A stretch of DNA of 64,000 bases from Ostrea edulis (lineage: Eukaryota). Every line of letters starts with the position of its first letter. The first letter of the stretch is position 1. This document shows, piece by piece, positions 2,788 through 45,900 of the stretch. The translations under genes were made by a program, and so were the position numbers. Location of the stretch: positions 31,000,001 through 31,064,000 of the forward strand of contig NC_079165.1 in assembly GCF_947568905.1 (NCBI RefSeq), in the 5' to 3' direction. The notes beneath the pieces are model-generated. The model worked only from the letters and a program-made list of their open reading frames with translations. It was not told the origin of the DNA and made no database searches.

Positions 2788-3393
2788 ATATGTTTGGCAA
2801 TTTATCATCAGTTAGAACAAGGAGACTAAGGTGAGCAATGTGACCCATGAACCACTTGCTCATATTACACTACTGTGGGGGTCTATTCATTTCCCATCTC
2901 CAGAACTGGTCCAGGATATCGCCAGTATGTCTCCAGCCTCTACTTGCTATTTGAGAAACAGACAATAGAGATCTACTGGAGATCTCCGTACTGCAAGCGA
3001 GCAATTAAATTAGGATCACTCTTGTAGCTCTCCACCGGACCAAATGAATACAGCCTTTGTCTCATACACATATAATTTAGTATTAATTATAGTTTGTTAA
3101 TCCAAAACTATCAATCTATCATTGAAATGATTTTGTTTCTTTTGGGGAATTACAAGCAATTATTGCACATTTCTTTCTTTTATGCATTTTGGGGGACAAC
3201 AGCTAGTTCACATATTTAGGTGTATAATAATTGTAGTAATTAAATTTTCCCCACCCATAAACAAAGGGAAATATAAAATGGATGCAATCTATACCAGGAA
3301 GTCTATTACATATCGACTAGGCCCAGATTTCACCATAGCATACAGTAGTAATGGAAATATGTAAAAACTCAAAAGATGATTGATTGCTCCTAC

Positions 3394-3475
3394 CATATTT
3401 TGTGTCCTCTACCACTGGGTCAGACTCCTTAGTTGATTCTCGGTACCTGGGATCTTTTTTATCCTTTTTGCCCAT
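3394..3475 (-). CDS. Candidate alternative first exon (MGKKDKKDPRYRESTKESDPVVEDTKYG)
   Basis: Kozak context ACAATGG, ends KYG with phase-1 donor G|GTAGGA. Confidence 0.58.
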
Positions 3476-13974: not shown

Positions 13975-14044
13975 TTTTGGTATCGGCATCCTTTTTCTCT
14001 TTCGCCGTGTCCAAATCTTCTACTTTTGATTTTCCCGAGCCCAT
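13975..14044 (-). CDS. Candidate alternative first exon (MGSGKSKVEDLDTAKEKKDADTK)
   Basis: ATG, open frame, strong phase-1 donor A|GTGAGT, charged composition like SLC44 N-termini. Confidence 0.5.
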
Positions 14045-30900: not shown

Positions 30901-33900
30901 AAATCTTATGACGTCACAGGAGTGTGGAACTCCGTTAAAGGAAAGTTAAAGAGAACAATTTCAACAATGCTTAAGAAGTTACTTGAAGAGATCAAGACAA
31001 GCCAAATATGCAACCAACTGGTGCAGACGGTCTAAAAGGCACAGTGAACTACAGTTCAGTATGAAAACAAAAGCAAATCAAGTGTCTGTTTCTGTCCCAT
31101 TTGTATTTGCTGGGGAATCTTAACAGCAAATGTGTGTTCTGTAACTGTAAAACCAGCCTCAGAGTTGTACCAAAAGAGGTGAGAACTGATGTCTTTATCA
31201 TATTCGGTATATTAGTACCAGTAGGTTGTAAATGCTGTTCAAAAACATCTGTTGGGGGAAAACTGAATCCAAATCAAAGCATTAATACTGCACCATACAG
31301 AAAACGCTATTCCTCATTTGATTTACTCCACAAAACGTGAGGTTTCTCGTTCACATCAATTAATACATACAATATGTATGTCAATGGAAATGCAGAGTAC
31401 GTACTGTTGGATGTTGTGAGCATATATGCAGTGTCATTTGGTACCTTAGGTACTTCAGGCATCAGTGTAATTATGTGCGTGTTAAAAACCACTTAATGTC
31501 CAATATACATAATGCTGCCTGCGAAACAAATTCTGATGATGATTTTGATTAAATATCATTCTTTGAAGTATGATCTATATATTTGTTTTTAATTCTAAAT
31601 ATTTTGGACAGCGTTATAGTACAGTACTGTATCTATTGTAACCGGTGCCCAATCATGAATAGGCTTATTGTTCGTCAAGTTCACCCATCTTCTTTGAATG
31701 CAATTCTCTATCTTAAAAATAAGATGATCATTTAAGTATAAAATATCAGTATGCCTGCACTCACCCACTGATGCCGTTACAAGTAATTTACTGAGGAACA
31801 AAACATAGTCTGTAATTTTGTCCAACACCACTACCCTGAAACACAAAAAAAAGCAAAATTTTAAGAGTTATTTCCCTGACATAATGCGCTGAAGATCACT
31901 GAATCTAGGGACAGTAGAGTACCATACCTGACTATATTTCTTAGAATCAGGAAAAAGGCATCTTTAGCAGCTGTGCAGAAATTTTTGCCATAAACAGCAA
32001 TCTGTAAACAAAAACAAAAAAATTACTTTCAAACTTAAAATATAGAGACAATACAAAAACTAAAGAAATTGATATTGCCATAAGTATTGATACACAATAG
32101 TAAGGTTATCAATTCTATATATTAATTAGAAAAAAATGGGTTTTTTTTCATTGTGGTCATGCATACCAATATATATGCATTTCTGTTCAAAAATCTCATG
32201 AATTTCTCTAGACACCAGAAGCAGCATTTCAGACACCTGCAAATTAAAAATAAAATAAAATAAAGCTAGTACAATGTAATCACAGGGTTGGCACTCTTCT
32301 ATTTGATTTTATCAAATTTTCATGGATCTGTAGATAATAATCTCCGAGTTATTTTCTTTCCAAAATAAATTATAAATTTCAGATGAGTAACTTACGCTAA
32401 AAAGAATTTGGCCACTACATTTTCGGAGCCTTTGAGCTTATGGTCCATATATTCTAAAGCCACTCTTATCATCTGAATAATGGCAATGATTAGAGATCCA
32501 AATGCTAAAGATCCAAAATGGTATCTGTAAAAAAAATATAATACGCACACTATATAATTCTCTGACAGAACTAGAATCAAGTATTCAAAATACAAACAGT
32601 ACATGTGTTATAAAGGGCAAATAACTCTCAGTTTTGGCTGATACACGCATTACAGTTCAAGAGTATGCTCTCAATGTATTCTGTCCACCTGAAGCAATAT
32701 CATACTCATTTGTATTTTATCTGTATTAAAACTGTTTACAAGCTTAGGGCATGTCTTATTTACCCCCCACCCACCCCCAACACACACGATAAGAAAAAAG
32801 ATAACCATTCAAGCTTGATGAATGTACACTGTATTTTAGTATTTAATTAAAATTCTAACTTGATGTGGAAATTTGCTCAGCATGTTACTAACCTGAATGT
32901 TCTGTACAGTGATGCTGACAGAGGGAATGCTGGGATATCTTTGGGTTTCTCAAATGCCCAATAATAGGAAGCGAAGGCACCGGCCAGCACCATCTGCCCC
33001 ATAGCAACCACAAAGTTCATAGTCCAGAAAAACATAAACAGCATGAAAACCATCATCACTGTAATGTATCTGAAAGAAAATACATTCTCGTTCTTCAAGA
33101 TGTTCAATGGGAAGTACATTGTATCATGTTCATAAGAAAGACTGCAAAGAACATCCCACCCTAAGCCTGTAAAGCATGCCTACATTATTACACCCCTCTG
33201 AAAATGAGTCTATGATATGTTAAACCATGTCTACATCATTATACACCCCTCTGAAAATTATTTTGATATGTTGAAGTTAAAAATTATTTTGAAATGTTGA
33301 AGTTAAACACCCCTACATTATTACATCATGTAGACACATTTTTTTTATCAGAGCAGAGTTATACTTACTCTGTTCCTCCATATTTCACAAAATCACAATA
33401 GGAGCCTTGTGTAGTGCCCTGCAACAGATTCATGAGCATCATTAAATAACTCATCCTATCTTAGTCTCAGTAATACTGAAAATTCTGAGAGAGAGAGAGA
33501 GGGGGGGGGGGAGAGAGAGAGGAGGATATATATAGAGAGAGGCTTACATCAGGTTCACAAGGGATTCTGGAGAGATAGTAGTTGATCCCATCATCAGTGG
33601 TGTTGGTTCCATTTGTATAGTACTTCTGGTCCCCAATGGAAGCAATGTAACTTGCAGAGTTAAGAAATTGAAGTGTTTCAGAAAACTGTTCTCATTACAT
33701 TACTTTACTTGAGATACATGTATAACAAAATGATAAAAATATCAATGATGGAATTGGTCCAAAATCAGATTCGAGATATACAGCAACTTACAGGTTTACA
33801 ACTGTTAACTTGGAAATTAATGAGTGGTTATAATCTAATTTAACAATTCTTTTGGGAGAAAGAACTTTTGATATAAAAACCCCATATATTAGTTTCCCTA

Positions 33901-36900
33901 ATGTGCTTTTGTAAACAAAATATATTAATGTTGCAGAAATATCATCCATGCATAAGGCTTATCCAATGAATCTTCGTGATCATAATTTCGATACAATGAA
34001 CATTTTCTGTAACTCATCATTCAGCAATGTTGACAATTGAACAAGGATACACTGAGCTCAGTCCAAAGTACCCCACAATTACTAGCTGGAAGGCAAAGGG
34101 GAAGATTGGCCATATTAAAGTGAAGATCATGTTTCCAATGGCTCTAAAAATAGTAAGTCATAATTCAGAATTATTATCAGAAAGAATATGAAAGTTGATG
34201 GTAGAAAAAATTATCTAATGCTAAATGCATATATTCCTGTTACAATAAAATCTTTTAAAGAATGAACAGTTGATAGTTATACTAAATATCTCACCGGCTT
34301 CCTTCTTTGATCAACTCAATAGCAATACAAATTCTGCTAAGGAGGAAGATCAGCAACAGGACAAATATGGCCAAAAATGTGGCAGTTCCACAGGCTGGAA
34401 ATTAACAAAAAAGAATCTTATCCTCACAATTGATATCAAACATACCATATTAAAGCAATACAAGCTGTAACTGATGGTATTTTGTCAACTATATATCCAA
34501 TTATGCACCAAATGACACATATCTATATAACTAAAATAATCTCCCAAGATCTGAAAAAAAATTCAGCAAAATAAACAAGGGAATATTGTTTGAGAGCATT
34601 ACCGTGAACATGGGAACGTTCGATTGCTGAATATACAAAGTCATATACAAAGATGGAAACTGATGTGAGTAACTACATGTCATTTGTTTTAAAATATTAC
34701 ATCATTTCATGAATGACAAAAAAGTACAAGTGTAAGAAAGTAATTATTATGCAAATGTGCCACTCATGAAATTTTGATTGTAAATTTTCTATAAAATTGG
34801 CCTGTTAAATTGTTTACAAATCTGACACGTGCTCAGTGCCTCTTCTTCGCTTTTTTCCAAATTGGTGACCTCCGAGGTCAATGCACATCAGAGATTACGA
34901 GAAGAAATTACTGACAGGATGACAACGATTCATGAATCCATATTTTCTGCTGATTGGACGGGTTTATTGCTTCAGATTCACTCTGATATTCTATGAAGTT
35001 ATATATATTCAATCACAAATATTCTAAATATTTGTTCTTTTATTTTTTCAATTTATTTGCCATCAGTTAGAGCTTGTATTGCTTTAAACATTGAAAAATT
35101 AATTCCTGTTAATTTCATTGAAAATTTACCTCCGAGAACTACAAAGATTCTGAGATGAAAAAGTGTGTAGAATTTTTTTTAGACGTAATGAAAAATTATA
35201 TTTCTTCCATGCTCAGATCATGCTTACCAAAAGCCAGCCATGTTTCTTTGAGCTGTAGGTAGTAGCTGAAGTTGAGGGCGAAAGCCTCGGAGTAACCCCA
35301 TTCTCCTGTCACATTCTTTGTCTTTAGATCGTAGTACTGAACATAACTGTAGTAGCAGGCTACAATTCAGAAAACAAAGTCAATCAGGTTCAGGAACAAT
35401 TTGTGGATCAAGATTACGGGGGACATATTCCACTACAGTCACTGCAGAGATCAAAGAAATGCCGCTGCCATTATTCTGCAATATTCCTGACTAGATATTT
35501 TGTATTGCCTTAAAACAGCTGTTAAATGTATAATTTATGGCTGTTCTGTGATCCTCCCTACTGTTTTTACACTTTGTGTCTCAAAGCTAATAAACCAATG
35601 AAATTATAACTGATCATTTTATTTAATAATCATAAAAATCATTCCATATAATGCACAAATAAATTTATAAATGACTGATATATACCTACATGTATATTAC
35701 AACAGTAATACAATATAACTGGTACCTTAATATTAAACACGAACTACAAGTCAAAACAACAATCATATATGGAATCTAAGAAAAAACCTTGTTCATTCCT
35801 TTCTTTGCAAAATGATAGAACATTAACCTACCATATGACAAAACAGCTAATACTGCGAAAATACTGAACCACACAATAATTCCCGTCAGCCATCGCATCA
35901 GAACAATCCAGATAAAACATGTCACCATGGCAGCACCCATAAACCTGTGTTAAACGTCAAGACATCTTTTATCATGAAGCATTCCTTTACTGGTTGTAAA
36001 ATAATGAGAGTTTAGGATTCACAGTAACACAAGTAATTAATGAATGAAGTTACATTTTTTCTGTGTGTAGGTTACATTTTACTGTACCGATACTTACACA
36101 ATCAGTCAATACCAGCATTTCTTCTGTGTGATTGTTAGATTTTACTATACCGATACTTACACAATCAGTCAATACCAGCATTTCTTCTGTGTCTATGTTA
36201 CATTTTACTGTACCGATACTTACACAATCAGTCAATACCAGCATTTCTTCTGTGTCTATGTTACATTTTACTGTACCGATACTTACACAATCAGTCAATA
36301 CCAGCATTTCTTCTGTGTCTATGTTACATTTTACTGTACCGATACTTACACAATCAGTCAATACCAGCATTTCTTCTGCGTGATTGTTAGATTTTACTAT
36401 ACCAATACTTACACAATCAGTCAATACCAGCATTTCTTCTGTGTCTATGTTACATTTTACTGTACCGATACTTACACAAGCAGTAGATACCAGGAGGCAA
36501 CAACGTCCTTGAAGATCCTCTCCACAACTTCACTGACCGACATAAATTTAGCCAGCCAACTGGAAGATCAGAATAATTTACTTTATCATTACGATACTGA
36601 GAACAAAGTAAGCTGTTATATATAAAAATGCCATAAAAATGACTCAATTTTGATAGCAACTGCATGGATAAAAATTAAGGGCTCAAAGATCATTGATGAA
36701 AACTCAACATATTGATCAGGTACTTTAAGATTGTACAGGTCTCCCAAATAAACAGAACACCTTTAATCTGTTGTAAATAGTGCTTCATAATAATGCAGAT
36801 TATCGTAAGCCTGAAGCTGAGATTTCTACTATGTACACAGAGTCAGCTACAACTGCAGTGGAATATATAATATGTACATGTATATTTCACTAAATGTCAA

Positions 36901-39900
36901 TAGCAAAAGATAATACATATACAAATGTATGTCAAGGTCAAATTGTCACAATGTCATTGACCTTGGTTTCATTTGAAATAAGATTCATTAAAATGTACAG
37001 TAAGCCATCCATTAAGTCTAAATCTCCCAAATACTTAATGTGTACTGTAGTTGAAAAGTAGCTGCAGAACTGTAGCTCTCGGAGAAAATATTGGGATAGT
37101 TCTGATCTGTCCCTATATTTTCTCAGAGAGCTACAGTTAAAAAGGTATGAACAAGGTTTGAAACAGACAGGTAAACCCTACAAATCAAGCTTAGGGCATA
37201 TGAATGAAACTCTCTGTCCATATACTCACTAGCTAGCCTCGTTCATGGCATCTCCCGTGATTCCTTCACCGGCAGAGTTGGTGAGATTGAAGTCGGTACT
37301 GCCATCAGTAACATACAGGTTCTGAGCCCAGTCTGTTATCTCCAGAAAGAAGGAGGGGATGCAACGACCAACCACTGTTCAAAAATCACACATCACCACA
37401 TTAAACATATGCAAAGGCCCATTCCTTTTTCTTGTGAGAATGGACATTTGGAACAAAATGTACTGTGACAGTGCGAAAATTAGAAAAAGGATTTTCTGTC
37501 AAACACTATATATATCAATTCCCTATATGCTACACACACATTTCATTGGCCTTCTACCAGCTAGTTAACCACAAGAGTCAACACCTGCATGTATGCGTCC
37601 ACTAGTGCTAATAGATCTCAGATAGTGTAGCAAGTATGATGCTTGGATTTGGAGAGGGGGGGGGGGGGGGGGTGTCGAGGTAGTCCCAACCCCTACTCCC
37701 TGGAATTTGCTTTCATTCTTTTAAAACCTATTTGATGTTAAATTTGAAAAATAATTATAATAAAGTAACAAAAACTTTTATTTTATATGACGTGGAGCAA
37801 TATTGCCATAGCAACAAAATGGAAACAGAAAAAGCTAAAACATATTGTGATGTCATTCCTAAGACATCGATCATATTGCATGACCTAGCTATCATATCAA
37901 TCAGTTTATTCAATATAAATGATGTTCATAAAGTTAAAGGAACCATTCAAATTACATTTTAAATCCAGGAAATGGCCAACAGGAATATGGTAAAGCCCGT
38001 GCACAAAATGAAGGTATACTTAGTAAGCAATCAAACAAAACTACGGGCCCATCACTTTATTAGGTGCACTTAATGGAAAATCTTCATTAGCGCTCATCAT
38101 ATGAACGTCTTTATAACTTTGCTGATGAAATTGATTAGTACTGTACATGAAACTCGGACAAGATTCAGGAAAGCTTGAATTATTGTACTGCTGACAATGT
38201 TATTGATTTTTCTTTGAAAATGATGAACCTAGCTCCTTTCTTCAAAATTATAAACTTTGATACATAATCGAGTAAATCATCTTCGCTGAGCCAAGTGTGA
38301 CGATACACGCAGTGTTTCTCTTTCAAAGAGAAACATCGCGTACTGTCACCCTTGGCTAGCAAAGATGAGAGTAAACTTTAAGCTTTTATGCATTGAAATG
38401 TGGGGTTTTTTTTCAGAGTAAGGTATTAACAGATTTTATAGAGTGTACATCAAGAGTTGATACTAGTGCATATTCTATTACTATTACCATTATAGAATGT
38501 TCCAAAAAATGTCTAAGAAAGATATGGTTTAATTCAATATTTTTCAATACAGATGTCATTGAAAATTTCATTTCAATACATGTAGTGAAAACTGCCTAAT
38601 CTGACACCTGCGTATAATCAGTGAAAACTGCCTAATCTGACACCTGCATATAATCAGTGAAAACTGCCTAATCCGACACCTGTGCAATCCATTTCACTGG
38701 ACACTCCGACCCTTATTTTCATCCTCACTCTCATATTTTCATTGTTCTTTTTTACAATGTTTATTTCAACACACTGTGCATACTGACAAAAAATTGTCTC
38801 CCAGTGCAAGTTGGATTAGACAGGTTTCACTATATATAAAGAAATACATGACAATTCAAAACTTTCAGAGCAATTGTTGAAAAGTATATTTTACACTACA
38901 AGTATTTTGTCTCAAAATGTATTAGAAATCATATGAAAACTGGTAGCATGCTAAAAATGTATAATTCACTGTATACAAAAACATTTCTGCACAAGTGCAG
39001 GTTTCTGCAACTTGCTTAAATTTGGATATAATCAATTTGTTGTTCTTTTAAATACTATAATTAACGAACAATTCATATTTGCTGCTTAACGTAGTTCCAC
39101 ACTCGTGTGATGTCATAGGATTTTGCAAAGTCAATAATTTAATGATAGGAACAAAAATTTTGTTGGAATCTTTTTCAATAGTTATTGTAAAAAATCTTGT
39201 TAGCCATAAAATATTTCAAAATTCTTAGTTATATTTGAATAGTCAATTATATGTTTCAAAATATTGAATCCAAGGACAATAACTCTGTTTTCATTCAATT
39301 ATTTATCAAGTCCATAATGCGATATATTTCCTTTATTTTTGACAAACATTTTACCAAGGTGATAAGAAATCATTATCTGTGTTTTTTCATGAAATTACAT
39401 ACAATTTTAATCCCGAGTGATTTAAATAGCTCAGCTGTATGGTGCCAGACTTCAGTTTTTGATGGGTATACATAATCTGGAAGCTATAGATTTGAAATTA
39501 TTAAGGAAAGGTATGGATTTTTTCCCATGAATAACTATAACAGATGTAACTCTACTAATATAAACAGAAAAAATGATATGTAAACCATGCCATAAGGAAA
39601 ATGCGTCCACATTTGTTTGTTTTTTAACATTTTGGGGAATAACGCTAATTCAATAATTTTCCACATATTATTCTAAAACTTGATGAACATATTGAAAATG
39701 ACATGTGTTTTAGTTATTGACATGTTTCCCGATAAATAAATGCAATTCAAAAAATATTTTGTTGTTTTTATATTAAAATAACAACAAATAACTGTTTCCA
39801 ATGAATTTCATAAAAATCTACGTCGGGGTATATGACTTTAGTGGTGTATGTAATGAAAATTAATATGGAAACCCTTAACTGTTTTGCCTTTTTTCATTAC

Positions 39901-42900
39901 TCTGAATGTTAATTTATTGATTCCAAACAAAAAAATGCTACCTAAACCCCAAAAATCCAGGACTAAGGACCTACCTTAAAAGCAAGAATAATTAATACGA
40001 TCATATTTATGTATTCACTGCTACACAGTGAAAGCTTGACTGATTCTCACCTGGAGTTGACTTAACATAATAACTGGCACATGCATCTGCGTCGACCAGA
40101 TCTTTTATAGAACCCTGAAATAAGAGGAAGGTTTAATTCAATTATTCTTCCATCTGAATAGGTATTTGTTTAATATAATGTAAATCACATTTCATTTGTG
40201 AGACCATTATTTACTCGTTATTAGTGATGAAGCGATTGTCGCTGATGATCGATTATCGGTCGTTGAGAGACCTACGATGCTACTAATCGATTACAATATA
40301 AATGTTTTTAGTCCGAATGCCCATCACTACTCGTAATTTCATTTTCACTCGGTTCCTGCTTTACAGATCCTGTAATGTAACTAATTATCATGGAAGTGCC
40401 AGTTTCTGTTTTATAATGTAATATAACTTACCACTGATTGAGGTGTTAGTTTCTGTTTTATCATGTAATGTAACTTACCACTGATCGGGGTGCTAGTTTC
40501 TGTTTCATAATGTAATGTAAATTACCACTGATCGGGGTGCTTAAGTTTCTGTTTTATAATGTAATGTAACTTACCATTGTTTGGGGTGCTAGTTTCTGTT
40601 TTATCATGTACTATAACTTACCACTGATTGGGGTGTCAGTTCCTTGTTTTATAATGTAATATAACTTACCAATGACCGAGGTGTTAGTTTCTGTTTTATA
40701 ATGTAATATAACTTACCACTGTAGTGTTAGTTCCTCCTTTACAGATCATGTCAGTGGCTCTGTCTGCTTGTGTTTTTGAAACACCTTCCAGTGCCTCTTG
40801 ATAAAGATAGTGCCAGTACGATGACGGACAGCTACTCACACAGACCTGTGATGGAGCAACATGGAACAGATTACACACCCAGTAAAAATCTCATGAAATG
40901 TTCAATAAATAGCAGTTTATGTACCAAAATTGACTATAACTATGATACATGTATTTAAAGATCAATACATCTTTGTATATATGCAAGATCTGGGGTCATC
41001 ATCCATGCAAAAGACCTTATTATACATGTAGCTTACATGTCAACAATTACAATACTAATGTCATTAACTGTTTATTCTGAAGTTTGGTCATACAGCGCAA
41101 AGCAATATTTTAAATTTAAAATGGTGCAATATCATTGTGTATTTTGTCAATGAAATAAGTTCAGTTTAACAATATTATCTTAATTGGGTCTTGTGACAGT
41201 CAATCAATATCTCCAATTAAAGTAATAAGTATTTCAATGACAAAGCTTTTCTAACAATTTCTACTGAAAATCTTACCCACATATGATATTTAAAAAAAAT
41301 CAAACATCAATGAGATAAAAAATTTGTATTACTTTTCAATCATAAAAAAAATGTTTGTGTCAGGTAAAAGTGTTTTCATGCAAAACTTTTCATTTCATTG
41401 TCTAAATATGGTATACACCTTTCTGTAACAGAAATCAACAGAGACAAGAGACCTTACAGGGTCCCTACACACTATTGAATGTCCTTCAAGATATTTTAAC
41501 AGTCCAGGTGGGACTTAAATATCAGTCACTGAGCCAGAACTACAACCTGTGACTTTGACCTAGTCCACCTAAAATTGTGTCAGGTGTAAGGATCTGATGC
41601 TTCATCATTATTACAAAGTTATAATTCACCCATACTCAGTGGGATAAAACAGCCTGACATTTAACACAGTGATTCTAATTATACCCCCAACATTTCATAG
41701 TGGACAGAGGAAGGGGAAGAGCATTAGCTGATCCTTCATTTTAAATTCTCTAACAAGGTAATTACGACTGAAATCCTACCAATGGTAATTATGACTGAAA
41801 TCCCACAATACAATGTTTCATGCTCAGGCGACTACGAGTTTGATAAAATCAGATGATAAAGATGACGAACCTGAGGTGTGGGACACCCGGTAATAATGAC
41901 TGCTGAGCCTGTCTTGGCACACTGTAACATGTCAAAGTACACAAGATAGGGCTTCCCTCTGGAATAAATAAAAAAGTAACGACATAAATACTAAAACCTC
42001 TTCACTCCTATTTCAGTCACTGATACAGACAATACTAAAACCTTTTCACTCCTAAATCAGTCACTGATACAGACAATACTAAAACCTCTTCATTCCTAAA
42101 TCAGTCACTGATACAGACAATACTAAAACCTCTTCATTCCTAAATCAGTCACTGATACAGACAATACTAAAACCTCTTCACTTCTAAATCAGTCACTGAT
42201 ACAGACAATACTAAAACCTCTTCACTCCTAAATCAGTCACTGATACAGACAATACTAAAACCTCTTCACTCCTAAATCAGTCACTGATACAGACAATACT
42301 AAAACCTCTTCATTCCTAAATCACAGCCACTAATACACACAATACTAAAACCTCTTCATTCCTAAATCAGTCACTGATACAGACAATACTAAAACCTCTT
42401 CATTCCTAAATCAGTCACTGATACAGACAATACTAAAACCTCTTCACTTCTAAATCAGTCACTGATACAGACAATACTAAAACCTCTTCACTCCTAAATC
42501 AGTCACTGATACAGACAATACTAAAACCTCTTCACTCCTAAATCAGTCACTGATACAGACAATACTAAAACCTCTTCATTCCTAAATCACAGCCACTAAT
42601 ACAGACAATACTAAAACCTCTTCATTCCTAAATCAGTCACTGATACAGACAATACTAAAACCTCTTCATTCCTAAATCAGTCACTGATACAGACAATACT
42701 AAAACCTCTTCATTCCTAAACTGATACAGACAATACTAAAACCTCTTCACTCCTAAATCACAGTCACTGAATCTGATACAGACAATACTAAAACCTCTTC
42801 ATTCCTAAATCAGTCACTGATACAGACAATACTAAAACCTCTTCATTCCTAAATCAGTCACTGAATCTGATACAGACAATACTAAAACCTCTTCATTCCT

Positions 42901-45900
42901 AAATCAGTCACTGAATCTGATACAGACAATACTAAAACCTCTTCATTCCTAAATCAGTCACTGATACAGACAATACTAAAACCTCTTCATTCCTAAATCA
43001 GTCACTGATACAGACAATACTAAAACCTTTTCACTCCTAAATCAGTCACTGATACAGACAATACTAAAACCTCTTCATTCCTAAATCAGTCACTGATACA
43101 GACAATACTAAAACCTCTTCATTCCTAAATCAGTCACTGATACAGACAATACTAAAACCTCTTCACTCCTAAATCAGTCACTGATACAGACAATACTAAA
43201 ACCTCTTCACTCCTAAATCACAGCCACTAATACAGACAATACTAAAACCTCTTCATTCCTAAATCACAGCCACTAATACAGACAATACTAAAACCTCTTC
43301 ACTCCTAAATCACAGCCACTAATACAGACAATACTAAAACCTCTTCATTCCTAAATCAGTAACTGAATCTGATACAGACAATACTAAAACCTCTTCATTC
43401 CTAAATCAGTCATTGAATCTGATACAGACAATACTAAAACCTCTTCATTCCTAAATCAGTCACTGATACAGACAATACTAAAACCTCTTCACTCCTAAAT
43501 CACAGTCACTGATACTGACTATAATCCTTGCGTTCTGCACTATATACTCATTTAAATTATACATAATAATAATGAGTGTATATTCACTATAACTCCCAAC
43601 AGTAATTGCACCCTCCACGACTGTCATTTAATTAAGAATTTTGTCCCGAATATTAAGCTGTACTCATTCTTCCAACAATCAATAAACATATGAACAGGAT
43701 AATGAACAGTGATCGATCTCATAAATCTTATACAGAATACAAAATTAAGAGAAGGGCAAACACCGACCCCTGGATATACATGTACCAGAGGTGGGATCAG
43801 GTCCCTTAGTGAATAGATATTCACTTTATTCCAATTTCTTGTAGACTGGACTCATAGATCCATAATCTGCACTTAATTAAAATATCTATAATCTGACACA
43901 ACCCATAACCACCCATATCTGCTTTTATTCACTGTCTAAAACAAAATGAACCCACTTACAATATATATCCACAATCTGACACAAAACATACCCACTAGTA
44001 TCCAAAATCTAAAACAAAATATATCTGCTTGTATCCACAGTCTGATACAAAATGTACCCACTCAATCAACAATCTGACACAAAATATACCTACTTGTATC
44101 CAAAATCTAAAACAAAATGTATCTACTTGTATCCACAGTTTGACACAAAATGTACCCACTTATATCCATGATCCAAGTGAGCCAAAATGTAGCCACTTGT
44201 ATCCATGATCTGACCCAAAATGTAGCCACTTGTATCCATGATCTGACCCAAAATGTAGCCACTTGTATCCATGATCTGACCCAAAATGTATCTACTTGTA
44301 TTCAGAATCTAAAACAAAATGTACTCCTGCGTATCCATAGTCCACTACAAAACGTAACCACTTATATCCAATCCAACAGAAACTGTATTGCTTGTATATA
44401 CAAACCATACACATAAACTCTTTCAGTTAAAAATAAATTTTCACTCATTCAAATCCATAATCACACTCACGTGTATCCTGTATCATATCCACATATATTT
44501 CCTGAGGAGTCTGTAGGATATAAGAGCTTGTATGGGTTTCCTCGGGCATATCCTACAAAATGTTCCAAATATACATCACTTATTTCACATGTAGCAAAAC
44601 GTGCTTCAATGAATTGGAAAAGTAACTTTCTGTAAAATTAACCATCAAACATTTATCAATATCCTAGAAAGAACATTGTCTATAGTGGACTTATGTACAG
44701 AGCTAGCTGAGGTCAAAGCACATGCAATTAGGCTCTACATGTCAAAATTCAGAAATTGTTAACAAGGAATATTTGACACAAGTTAATCTTTATTCTTTCA
44801 ATAAGATTCTTACCTATTGCAGAACACACTACCATTCCAGCAATGAAGATCAGAAATAATAAACAGCAAATGACATCTGTGCATGATCTGTGAAGAGATT
44901 GAAAACATTAATTTACATGGATTTCATAAGAGTTGTTTCCCTTTAAGCAGCATTGCATTTCTTAATCTTTTGATAAATTGTACAATTTCAGTAAAATGTT
45001 ATAAGCTGCTATTTAATTCATTACCTTAAATTTTAAAGCATTTAGAAAATGCAAGTTAAACTATAGGAAGTGATTTCTTATCTACACAATTTCAATTAAG
45101 TCTCTCTTAGATCCAATTTAAAATGCAGTCCATAATTCCTTATCAAATCAAAGAGTTTCACAGAGCTCGACAATCAATTCCAAAATCACGTCAGAACAAA
45201 ATTACAATCAAAATGAAATACCAACTTCAAATTAAAGCCACAAGAGACCAAAAACTTCTGTCAGAGTTTAAAATTCTATCCTATTCCCCACACCCAGCTA
45301 ACAAATGGACGGGGTTAATAGCAAGTAGAAGATCCGACTATTTAAAAAGATTTGAGATTTCAACATTACTTTGACACACGTCGAGTACTACATGTATCAG
45401 ATATACATGTAGATATGAACATTCCAATTTTTATTTTGATATTCAAATTATGTGAATTTCTAATCATACATAACGTACAAATATTAGCCACATACTGTAA
45501 AAGTGATAATATTTATGCTGGGAGTTAGGTACACGTTTTTCCATGTCCAACATTACCAGTGGGGGAAAATATGTGGTAAGTGAATATGATACATGTATAT
45601 ATCATATCAAATATTTATAACTAAAAGCGTGTGAAAAAATGTTCTTATTATGATTGTGTAATTAGTGTAAATTTCCCTCACGTGTAAATAACCAATTTTA
45701 CAATATTATAAATAAAAATATTTCCCTTTTTCGTTTAGTTGGAACATTACAGATCCATAAAAAATTGATACAGAGATGTGTGGCAAATGGGTTGTTCATT
45801 CAGATTTACTTTGCTTCATGAGAAGTGTATGATAATTAGGTCCTTCTGCCTCATGCTATTTAATAAAGACATGCTTCAGTAATTTCATTGAAAGGAATGG

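Follow-up and report, generated by a model that had tools for sequence, protein, structure and literature searches.

Minisatellites that reiterate a splice site because they cross an exon-intron junction are a known kind of repeat in humans and lancelets. In intron 7 of the human F7 gene (IVS7), a 37-bp minisatellite starts on the exon-intron border itself, and experiments on this intron showed that its pseudo-sites are functional yet silent, the most upstream site winning in a manner termed 'oriented scanning' (PMC1557585). Similarly, only the authentic site is used in LMNB2 and PDGF, and the units whose pseudo-sites stay silent measure 37 (F7), 81 (PDGF) and 100 bp (LMNB2) (PMC1557585). The first one or two pseudo-sites are constitutively used as well in CBS and IFI6 (6-16) (as summarised in PMC1557585). 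The amphioxus 'mirage' minisatellites, described in Adh3 and the globins BflGb6/9, are reported to leave splicing undisturbed (PMC3087553). No paper on such junction-spanning minisatellites in molluscs was found in the literature searched. Rows of identical donors of this kind are natural experiments on 5' splice-site choice in which sequence cannot decide, and F7 has provided, in mammals, the rule that the upstream-most site wins. The present analysis concerns such a row in the oyster Ostrea edulis, within a window of 64,000 nucleotides (NC_079165.1, positions 31,000,001 to 31,064,000) to which all coordinates refer.

The oyster repeat is a 63-bp minisatellite of 7.0 units on the minus strand (36053..36493), delimited from the output of Tandem Repeats Finder (TRF) and from the register and variants of its units. 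TRF describes it as one array of period 63 with 7.0 copies, 92% matches, no indels and a score of 756. Each unit combines 18 nt of exon tail with 45 nt of intron 9 head (-18 to +45), and the first unit is made of the last 18 nt of exon 9 and the first 45 nt of intron 9. The initial annotation had placed seven copies of the exon 9 donor in this array, and the TRF register and motif positions put them exactly where it did: the minus-strand motif GTAAGTAT has its G(+1) at 36475, 36412, 36349, 36286, 36223, 36160 and 36097. The copies had been described as identical from -3 into the intron; the seven sites match without a single difference from -4 to +8. The corresponding 12-mer TTGTGTAAGTAT (TTGT|GTAAGTAT) occurs seven times in the window, compared with 0.02 expected from shuffles, and all seven occurrences lie inside the array. 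The first of them, the authentic donor (36468..36479, minus strand, G(+1) at 36475), is the site used in transcript contigs, while the other six are reiterated pseudo-donors (36090..36416, minus strand) that equal the real site from -4 to +8.

Differences between units are confined to other parts of the repeat. The intron-derived part, from +1 to +45, is identical in four units (that of unit 1 equals those of units 3, 4 and 5), a second variant is found in both unit 2 and unit 6, and a third in unit 7, giving the order A-B-A-A-A-B-A' along the array. In the six downstream units, the 18-nt exon-derived tail is always the same and departs from the real exon end at three positions, -11, -10 and -5. 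Open reading frames of 127-165 aa cross the array, which is trivial because 63 nt is 21 codons. A search against Rfam found no known RNA family in the repeat.

The oyster array is thus structurally of the 'mirage' or F7-IVS7 class, in that it has a tandem unit, takes in the end of a real, expressed exon and carries unchanged copies of the splice site. As in the F7 VNTR, the first unit lies over the exon-intron border and the authentic donor is followed by sequence-identical pseudo-donors. It differs from F7 in its longer unit (63 compared with 37 bp), in the larger contribution of the exon (18 nt compared with 4) and in the strong intron-side match of its donor (GTAAGTAT), which in F7 is the weak gugggu. 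The host is also a mollusc, and polymorphism and pseudo-site competence are F7 data, the oyster array being known from its sequence. The donor is likewise reiterated by junction-spanning minisatellites in the human CBS intron 13 (a 31-bp VNTR) and IFI6 intron 2. The amphioxus globin units are 150-160 bp long and include acceptor-side cases, whereas the oyster array is a 63-bp donor array; moreover, allelic and somatic length variation has been shown for the mirages, whereas the length given for the oyster array is that of one assembly. Interior units that evolve in concert, with the boundary units left out, are common to the oyster array and the amphioxus mirages (PMC3087553).

The host gene was placed by searches with a single exon and by aligning homologous proteins to the window. 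Used as a query, a conserved host exon at 32892-33068 (minus strand) retrieved 425 relatives, including proteins of 712-736 aa, and the closest full-length relatives belong to clusters named choline transporter-like protein 2 from Crassostrea and Mytilus. Searching bivalve CTL2 proteins against the window with tblastn gave about 20 collinear minus-strand exon matches running from 51257 down to 27803, and these HSPs align with CTL2 proteins of 733-735 aa from the same two genera. The nearest proteins retrieved, CTL2 of Crassostrea and Saccostrea, are about 66-69% identical over the HSPs, which places the animal among oyster relatives outside Crassostrea, and PF04515 (Choline_transpo) is on record for the matched proteins. 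By homology, then, the host is a CTL2/SLC44A2-like gene of the choline transporter-like (SLC44/CTL) family. The label 'exon 9' used in the initial annotation is appropriate, since mapping bivalve CTL2 proteins on the window makes this the ninth coding exon. It spans 84 nt (36476..36559, minus strand; 27 residues plus split codons), corresponds to conserved residues of CTL2, is preceded by an acceptor AG at 36561-36560 and coincides with the ninth tblastn HSP of the bivalve proteins P0005/P0007 as well as with the spliced contigs. Intron 9 (35945..36475, minus strand), a GT..AG intron of 531 nt according to the sequence and the spliced contigs, ends with an AG at 35946-35945, and is followed by the tenth coding exon of 113 nt (35832..35944, minus strand), which is covered by tblastn and by a piece of the X2 contig (35832-35942). 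Six extra units account for 378 of the 531 nt of intron 9, which before expansion would have measured about 153 nt.

The choice of donor has a direct bearing on the reading frame. Exon 9 ends in ...CTT GT and the first G of exon 10 completes the codon, while the unspliced frame continues as GTG TAA, with the in-frame TAA at 36472..36474 (minus strand) right after the first donor. The initial annotation was therefore right that any distal donor brings an immediate stop (36474-36472). As 63 is a multiple of 3, any downstream donor restores the frame yet keeps this TAA. This is unlike F7, where splicing at pseudo-sites five and six is said to avoid a premature stop (PMC1557585). The TAA lies at least 59 nt upstream of the next junction that a downstream donor would create, and twelve more junctions follow, so by the usual exon-junction rule downstream-donor mRNAs would be NMD substrates.

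Two public runs of one study, X1 and X2, from an organism referred to here as organism A, are not on record as RNA, but each contains one contig of about 2.5 kb that covers exons only and skips the introns, and these contigs are therefore spliced. In the X2 contig, window positions 35228-35359 correspond to contig positions 1267-1398, 35832-35942 to 1399-1509 and 37230-37374 to 1596-1740. The 86 nt left between the exon 10 and exon 8 pieces equal the 84 nt of exon 9 plus a GT that fits either side of the joint, and the X2 depth bins locate them at 36474-36559. In X1, the gap from exon 11 to exon 8 is 197 nt, the sum of 113 and 84. Increments of 63 nt at the joint between exons 9 and 10 are absent from the assembled contigs of X1 and X2. 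In the dominant assembled transcript of both runs, exon 9 is thus joined directly to exon 10 through the first donor (36475). Assembled contigs keep the dominant form, so that isoforms at a few percent, lowered further by NMD, are invisible in them. The organism A contigs, from a close relative or haplotype, differ from the window by 1-11% per exon, and those animals may lack the array.

Two further observations concern these runs. The divergence of organism A from the window is uneven, with 1-2 differences each in exons 9, 10 and 11 but 11/145 in exon 8 and 15/131 in exon 6, which could mean that organism A is a close species, that its haplotype is recombinant or that the transcript is a mosaic with a paralogue. 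X1, the putative RNA run, also holds a low-depth contig inside the array (36145-36343, bin depth 0.86) that may derive from pre-mRNA, from contaminating DNA or from the use of a downstream donor.

The outcome in the contigs is that of F7, with the most upstream site found in mRNA, although on the oyster side this is known from dominant assembled contigs; undisturbed splicing is also the behaviour reported for the amphioxus mirages. CBS and IFI6 differ in using their first pseudo-sites, where the oyster contigs show use of none, low levels being undetectable in contigs. The initial annotation had spoken of a proximal donor prevailing over the others; this holds in so far as the first donor adjoins the exon, but the donor in use is the most upstream of the seven and the furthest from the acceptor. 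Its advantage is not apparent in the site itself. The authentic donor carries TGT rather than CAG at -3 to -1, has no exon-side match to U1 and depends on the intron side, and the computed U1 duplex energy is -7.3 kcal/mol at all seven donors. RNA structure hiding the copies was considered and rejected, as in a partition-function fold of exon 9 and intron 9 the seven donors are similarly accessible (unpaired probability 0.21-0.38). Since neither sequence nor predicted structure separates the seven donors, position must decide. A pre-mRNA with seven identical U1 sites would be spliced at the most upstream one, either because exon definition extends from the acceptor as far as the first donor encountered or because the first site is committed during transcription, as the analogy with F7 suggests. 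The six copies would then behave as ordinary intron sequence and be removed with intron 9, and transcripts leaking to a downstream donor would gain 63n nt that start with TAA and be destroyed by NMD.

The repeat is local and specific to its lineage. Origin from a dispersed repeat or transposon was rejected, given that a search of the 895-Mb assembly with the 441-bp array returned one match only, and it follows that the array arose locally. Crassostrea orthologues keep the intron position and GTAAGTAT (the C. angulata site reads GC|GTAAGTAT). In C. angulata the same 84-nt exon ends in GC|GTAAGTATTT, and the intron behind it, about 462 nt long, contains no tandem repeat. Neither the C. angulata nor the C. 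virginica orthologue has an array or a second donor at the exon 9 junction, and C. virginica has no array at any junction of this gene. Absence from the Crassostrea orthologues makes the array younger than the split from Crassostrea. Its history may have begun with the tandem duplication of a 63-bp segment over the junction between exon 9 and intron 9 (18 + 45 nt), followed by expansion and homogenisation through slippage or unequal exchange. The leftmost unit would have kept the true exon end, leaving the coding sequence untouched; if the outermost tail is never replaced by unequal exchange, this would explain why that end has survived although unit 1 has been homogenised with the interior units in its intron part.

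A second junction-spanning array, with 6.8 copies of a 47-bp unit, sits on the exon 6 donor of this gene (40401..40721, minus strand; exon 6 at 40850..40717, authentic G(+1) at 40716). It is unrelated to the 63-bp array and contains five intact pseudo-donors and one that has decayed to GTAATT. In the X1 and X2 contigs, 67 nt lie between exon 8 and a piece at 40720-40850. These correspond to the 64 nt of exon 7 (40114..40051, minus strand) plus 3 nt of exon 6, and consequently the first donor of the 47-bp array is used too. The two arrays differ in where their copies vary. Among the six copied units of the 63-bp array, all nine variable positions fall in +9 to +45 and none in -18 to +8, a distribution with a probability of about 0.01-0.02 under a uniform model, calculated post hoc. 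This could hint at constraint on the copied donors, but the 47-bp array shows the opposite, with its variation concentrated in the copied exon tails.

Taken together, we consider it likely that the 63-bp array is a lineage-specific minisatellite across the junction, neutral or nearly so, and that an upstream-first choice of splice site passes over its copied donors. Absence in Crassostrea and the presence of a second array in the gene suggest that it arose as a by-product of mutation rather than as a device of this particular gene, and a neutral or slightly deleterious effect is far more probable for it than a regulatory role. The initial annotation had left two possibilities side by side, a natural case of the frame-consistent first donor beating six equal sites and a splice-choice/NMD rheostat. 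The former fits the contigs of both runs, in which exon 9 is exactly 84 nt. In the latter, a fraction of transcripts would use a downstream donor, reach the TAA and decay, so that more units would mean more loss and copy number would tune CTL2 output. Such a device is in keeping with seven sites equal in sequence and computed U1 pairing, with every extension containing an in-frame stop 59 nt or more ahead of the next junction, with the use of the nearest pseudo-sites in CBS and IFI6 (PMC1557585) and with the copied -18 to +8 segment being free of variation. However, the downstream-donor isoform is absent from the assembled transcript contigs (which drop rare isoforms), and the orthologues in C. 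angulata and C. virginica lack the alternative site, which regulated unproductive splicing would lead one to expect in related species. Moreover, the second array in the same gene argues for a mutational process, one decoy of that array has already decayed, and the pseudo-sites of F7, PDGF and LMNB2 are silent. Control of CTL2 output by copy number is therefore unlikely.

A broader proposal, for which we see rather little likelihood, is that junction-spanning minisatellites are frequent in the oyster lineage and that a low, copy-number-dependent leak through them produces heritable expression variation (cis-eQTLs, VNTR-encoded poison donors), the CTL2 array being one example and its invariant -18 to +8 segment reflecting selection or biased conversion on U1 sites. 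Intron-bound U1 can promote the use of nearby 5' splice sites and suppress premature cleavage. The extra U1 sites might accordingly be beneficial, either by reinforcing a donor with a weak exon side (TGT at -3 to -1) or by suppressing premature intronic cleavage. The missing exon-side U1 match of the authentic donor agrees with this, but in the Crassostrea orthologue a site of this kind (GC|GTAAGTAT) is spliced with no array present, and the array is not conserved, making a benefit very improbable. That the array or its copy number is an assembly error is scarcely credible: short-read contigs do break at the array with none spanning it, and the best DNA run may be the assembly's own source sample, but the DNA contigs of X4 stop at 36100 and restart at 36450, as the variants private to the last and first units would predict and just where 31-mers lose their uniqueness (through the last-unit variants and the first-unit difference at -5), which places the array in the reads, while array words are at raised depth in X6, a run from another study, and interspersed A and B unit types are unlike collapse or stutter.

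On the preferred reading of a neutral by-product, the oyster CTL2 array is an instance of a repeat already known from humans and lancelets and is probably otherwise ordinary. Together with its exon 6 twin, it shows in the assembled contigs of a mollusc the same outcome as F7 in mammals, here with a perfect intron-side U1 match and a spacing of 63 bp. This suggests that the positional, upstream-first rule is old and general. The locus also carries a warning for annotation, as gene predictors can pick a copied donor and thereby produce truncated models.

The surrounding sequence is AT-rich and free of N, with a G+C content of about 30-42% in 2-kb windows (mostly 30-37%), and is rich in minisatellites, with 45 TRF rows in 64 kb. 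Two of seven arrays in this gene span a donor, compared with about 0.25 expected under random founding duplications; as the window was chosen for the first array, only the second counts (P of about 0.17), and no enrichment is claimed. A random genome sample of 200 kb held 35 minisatellites, none with GTAAGT, the sample being small, mostly non-genic and uninformative. Other arrays lie close to exons. Some 30 nt separate the end of a 44-bp x 34 minisatellite (41987-43523) from the exon 5 match downstream of it (41957 downward), so that this repeat occupies the branch-point/polypyrimidine side of intron 4. Exon 4 is followed, after about 100 nt, by a 33-bp x 12 array (43966-44370). Intron 8 contains a short palindromic element (37059-37138) with a word depth of about 125,000 in DNA runs, compared with about 100 in its flanks, and with sub-threshold mir-3199-like Rfam matches on both strands (37068-37138); it is probably a high-copy MITE-like repeat. 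Intron 7 is, between 38530 and 40300, largely a high-copy repeat with an X4 depth of up to about 620,000 and many discordant joints, and this repeat is probably transposon-derived. Near the left end of the window, two minus-strand segments (3389-3475 and 13988-14044) match the N-terminal exon of other CTL2 isoforms (Saccostrea P0236, P0233) and are likely to be alternative first exons of a second SLC44 gene with its body beyond the left window end.
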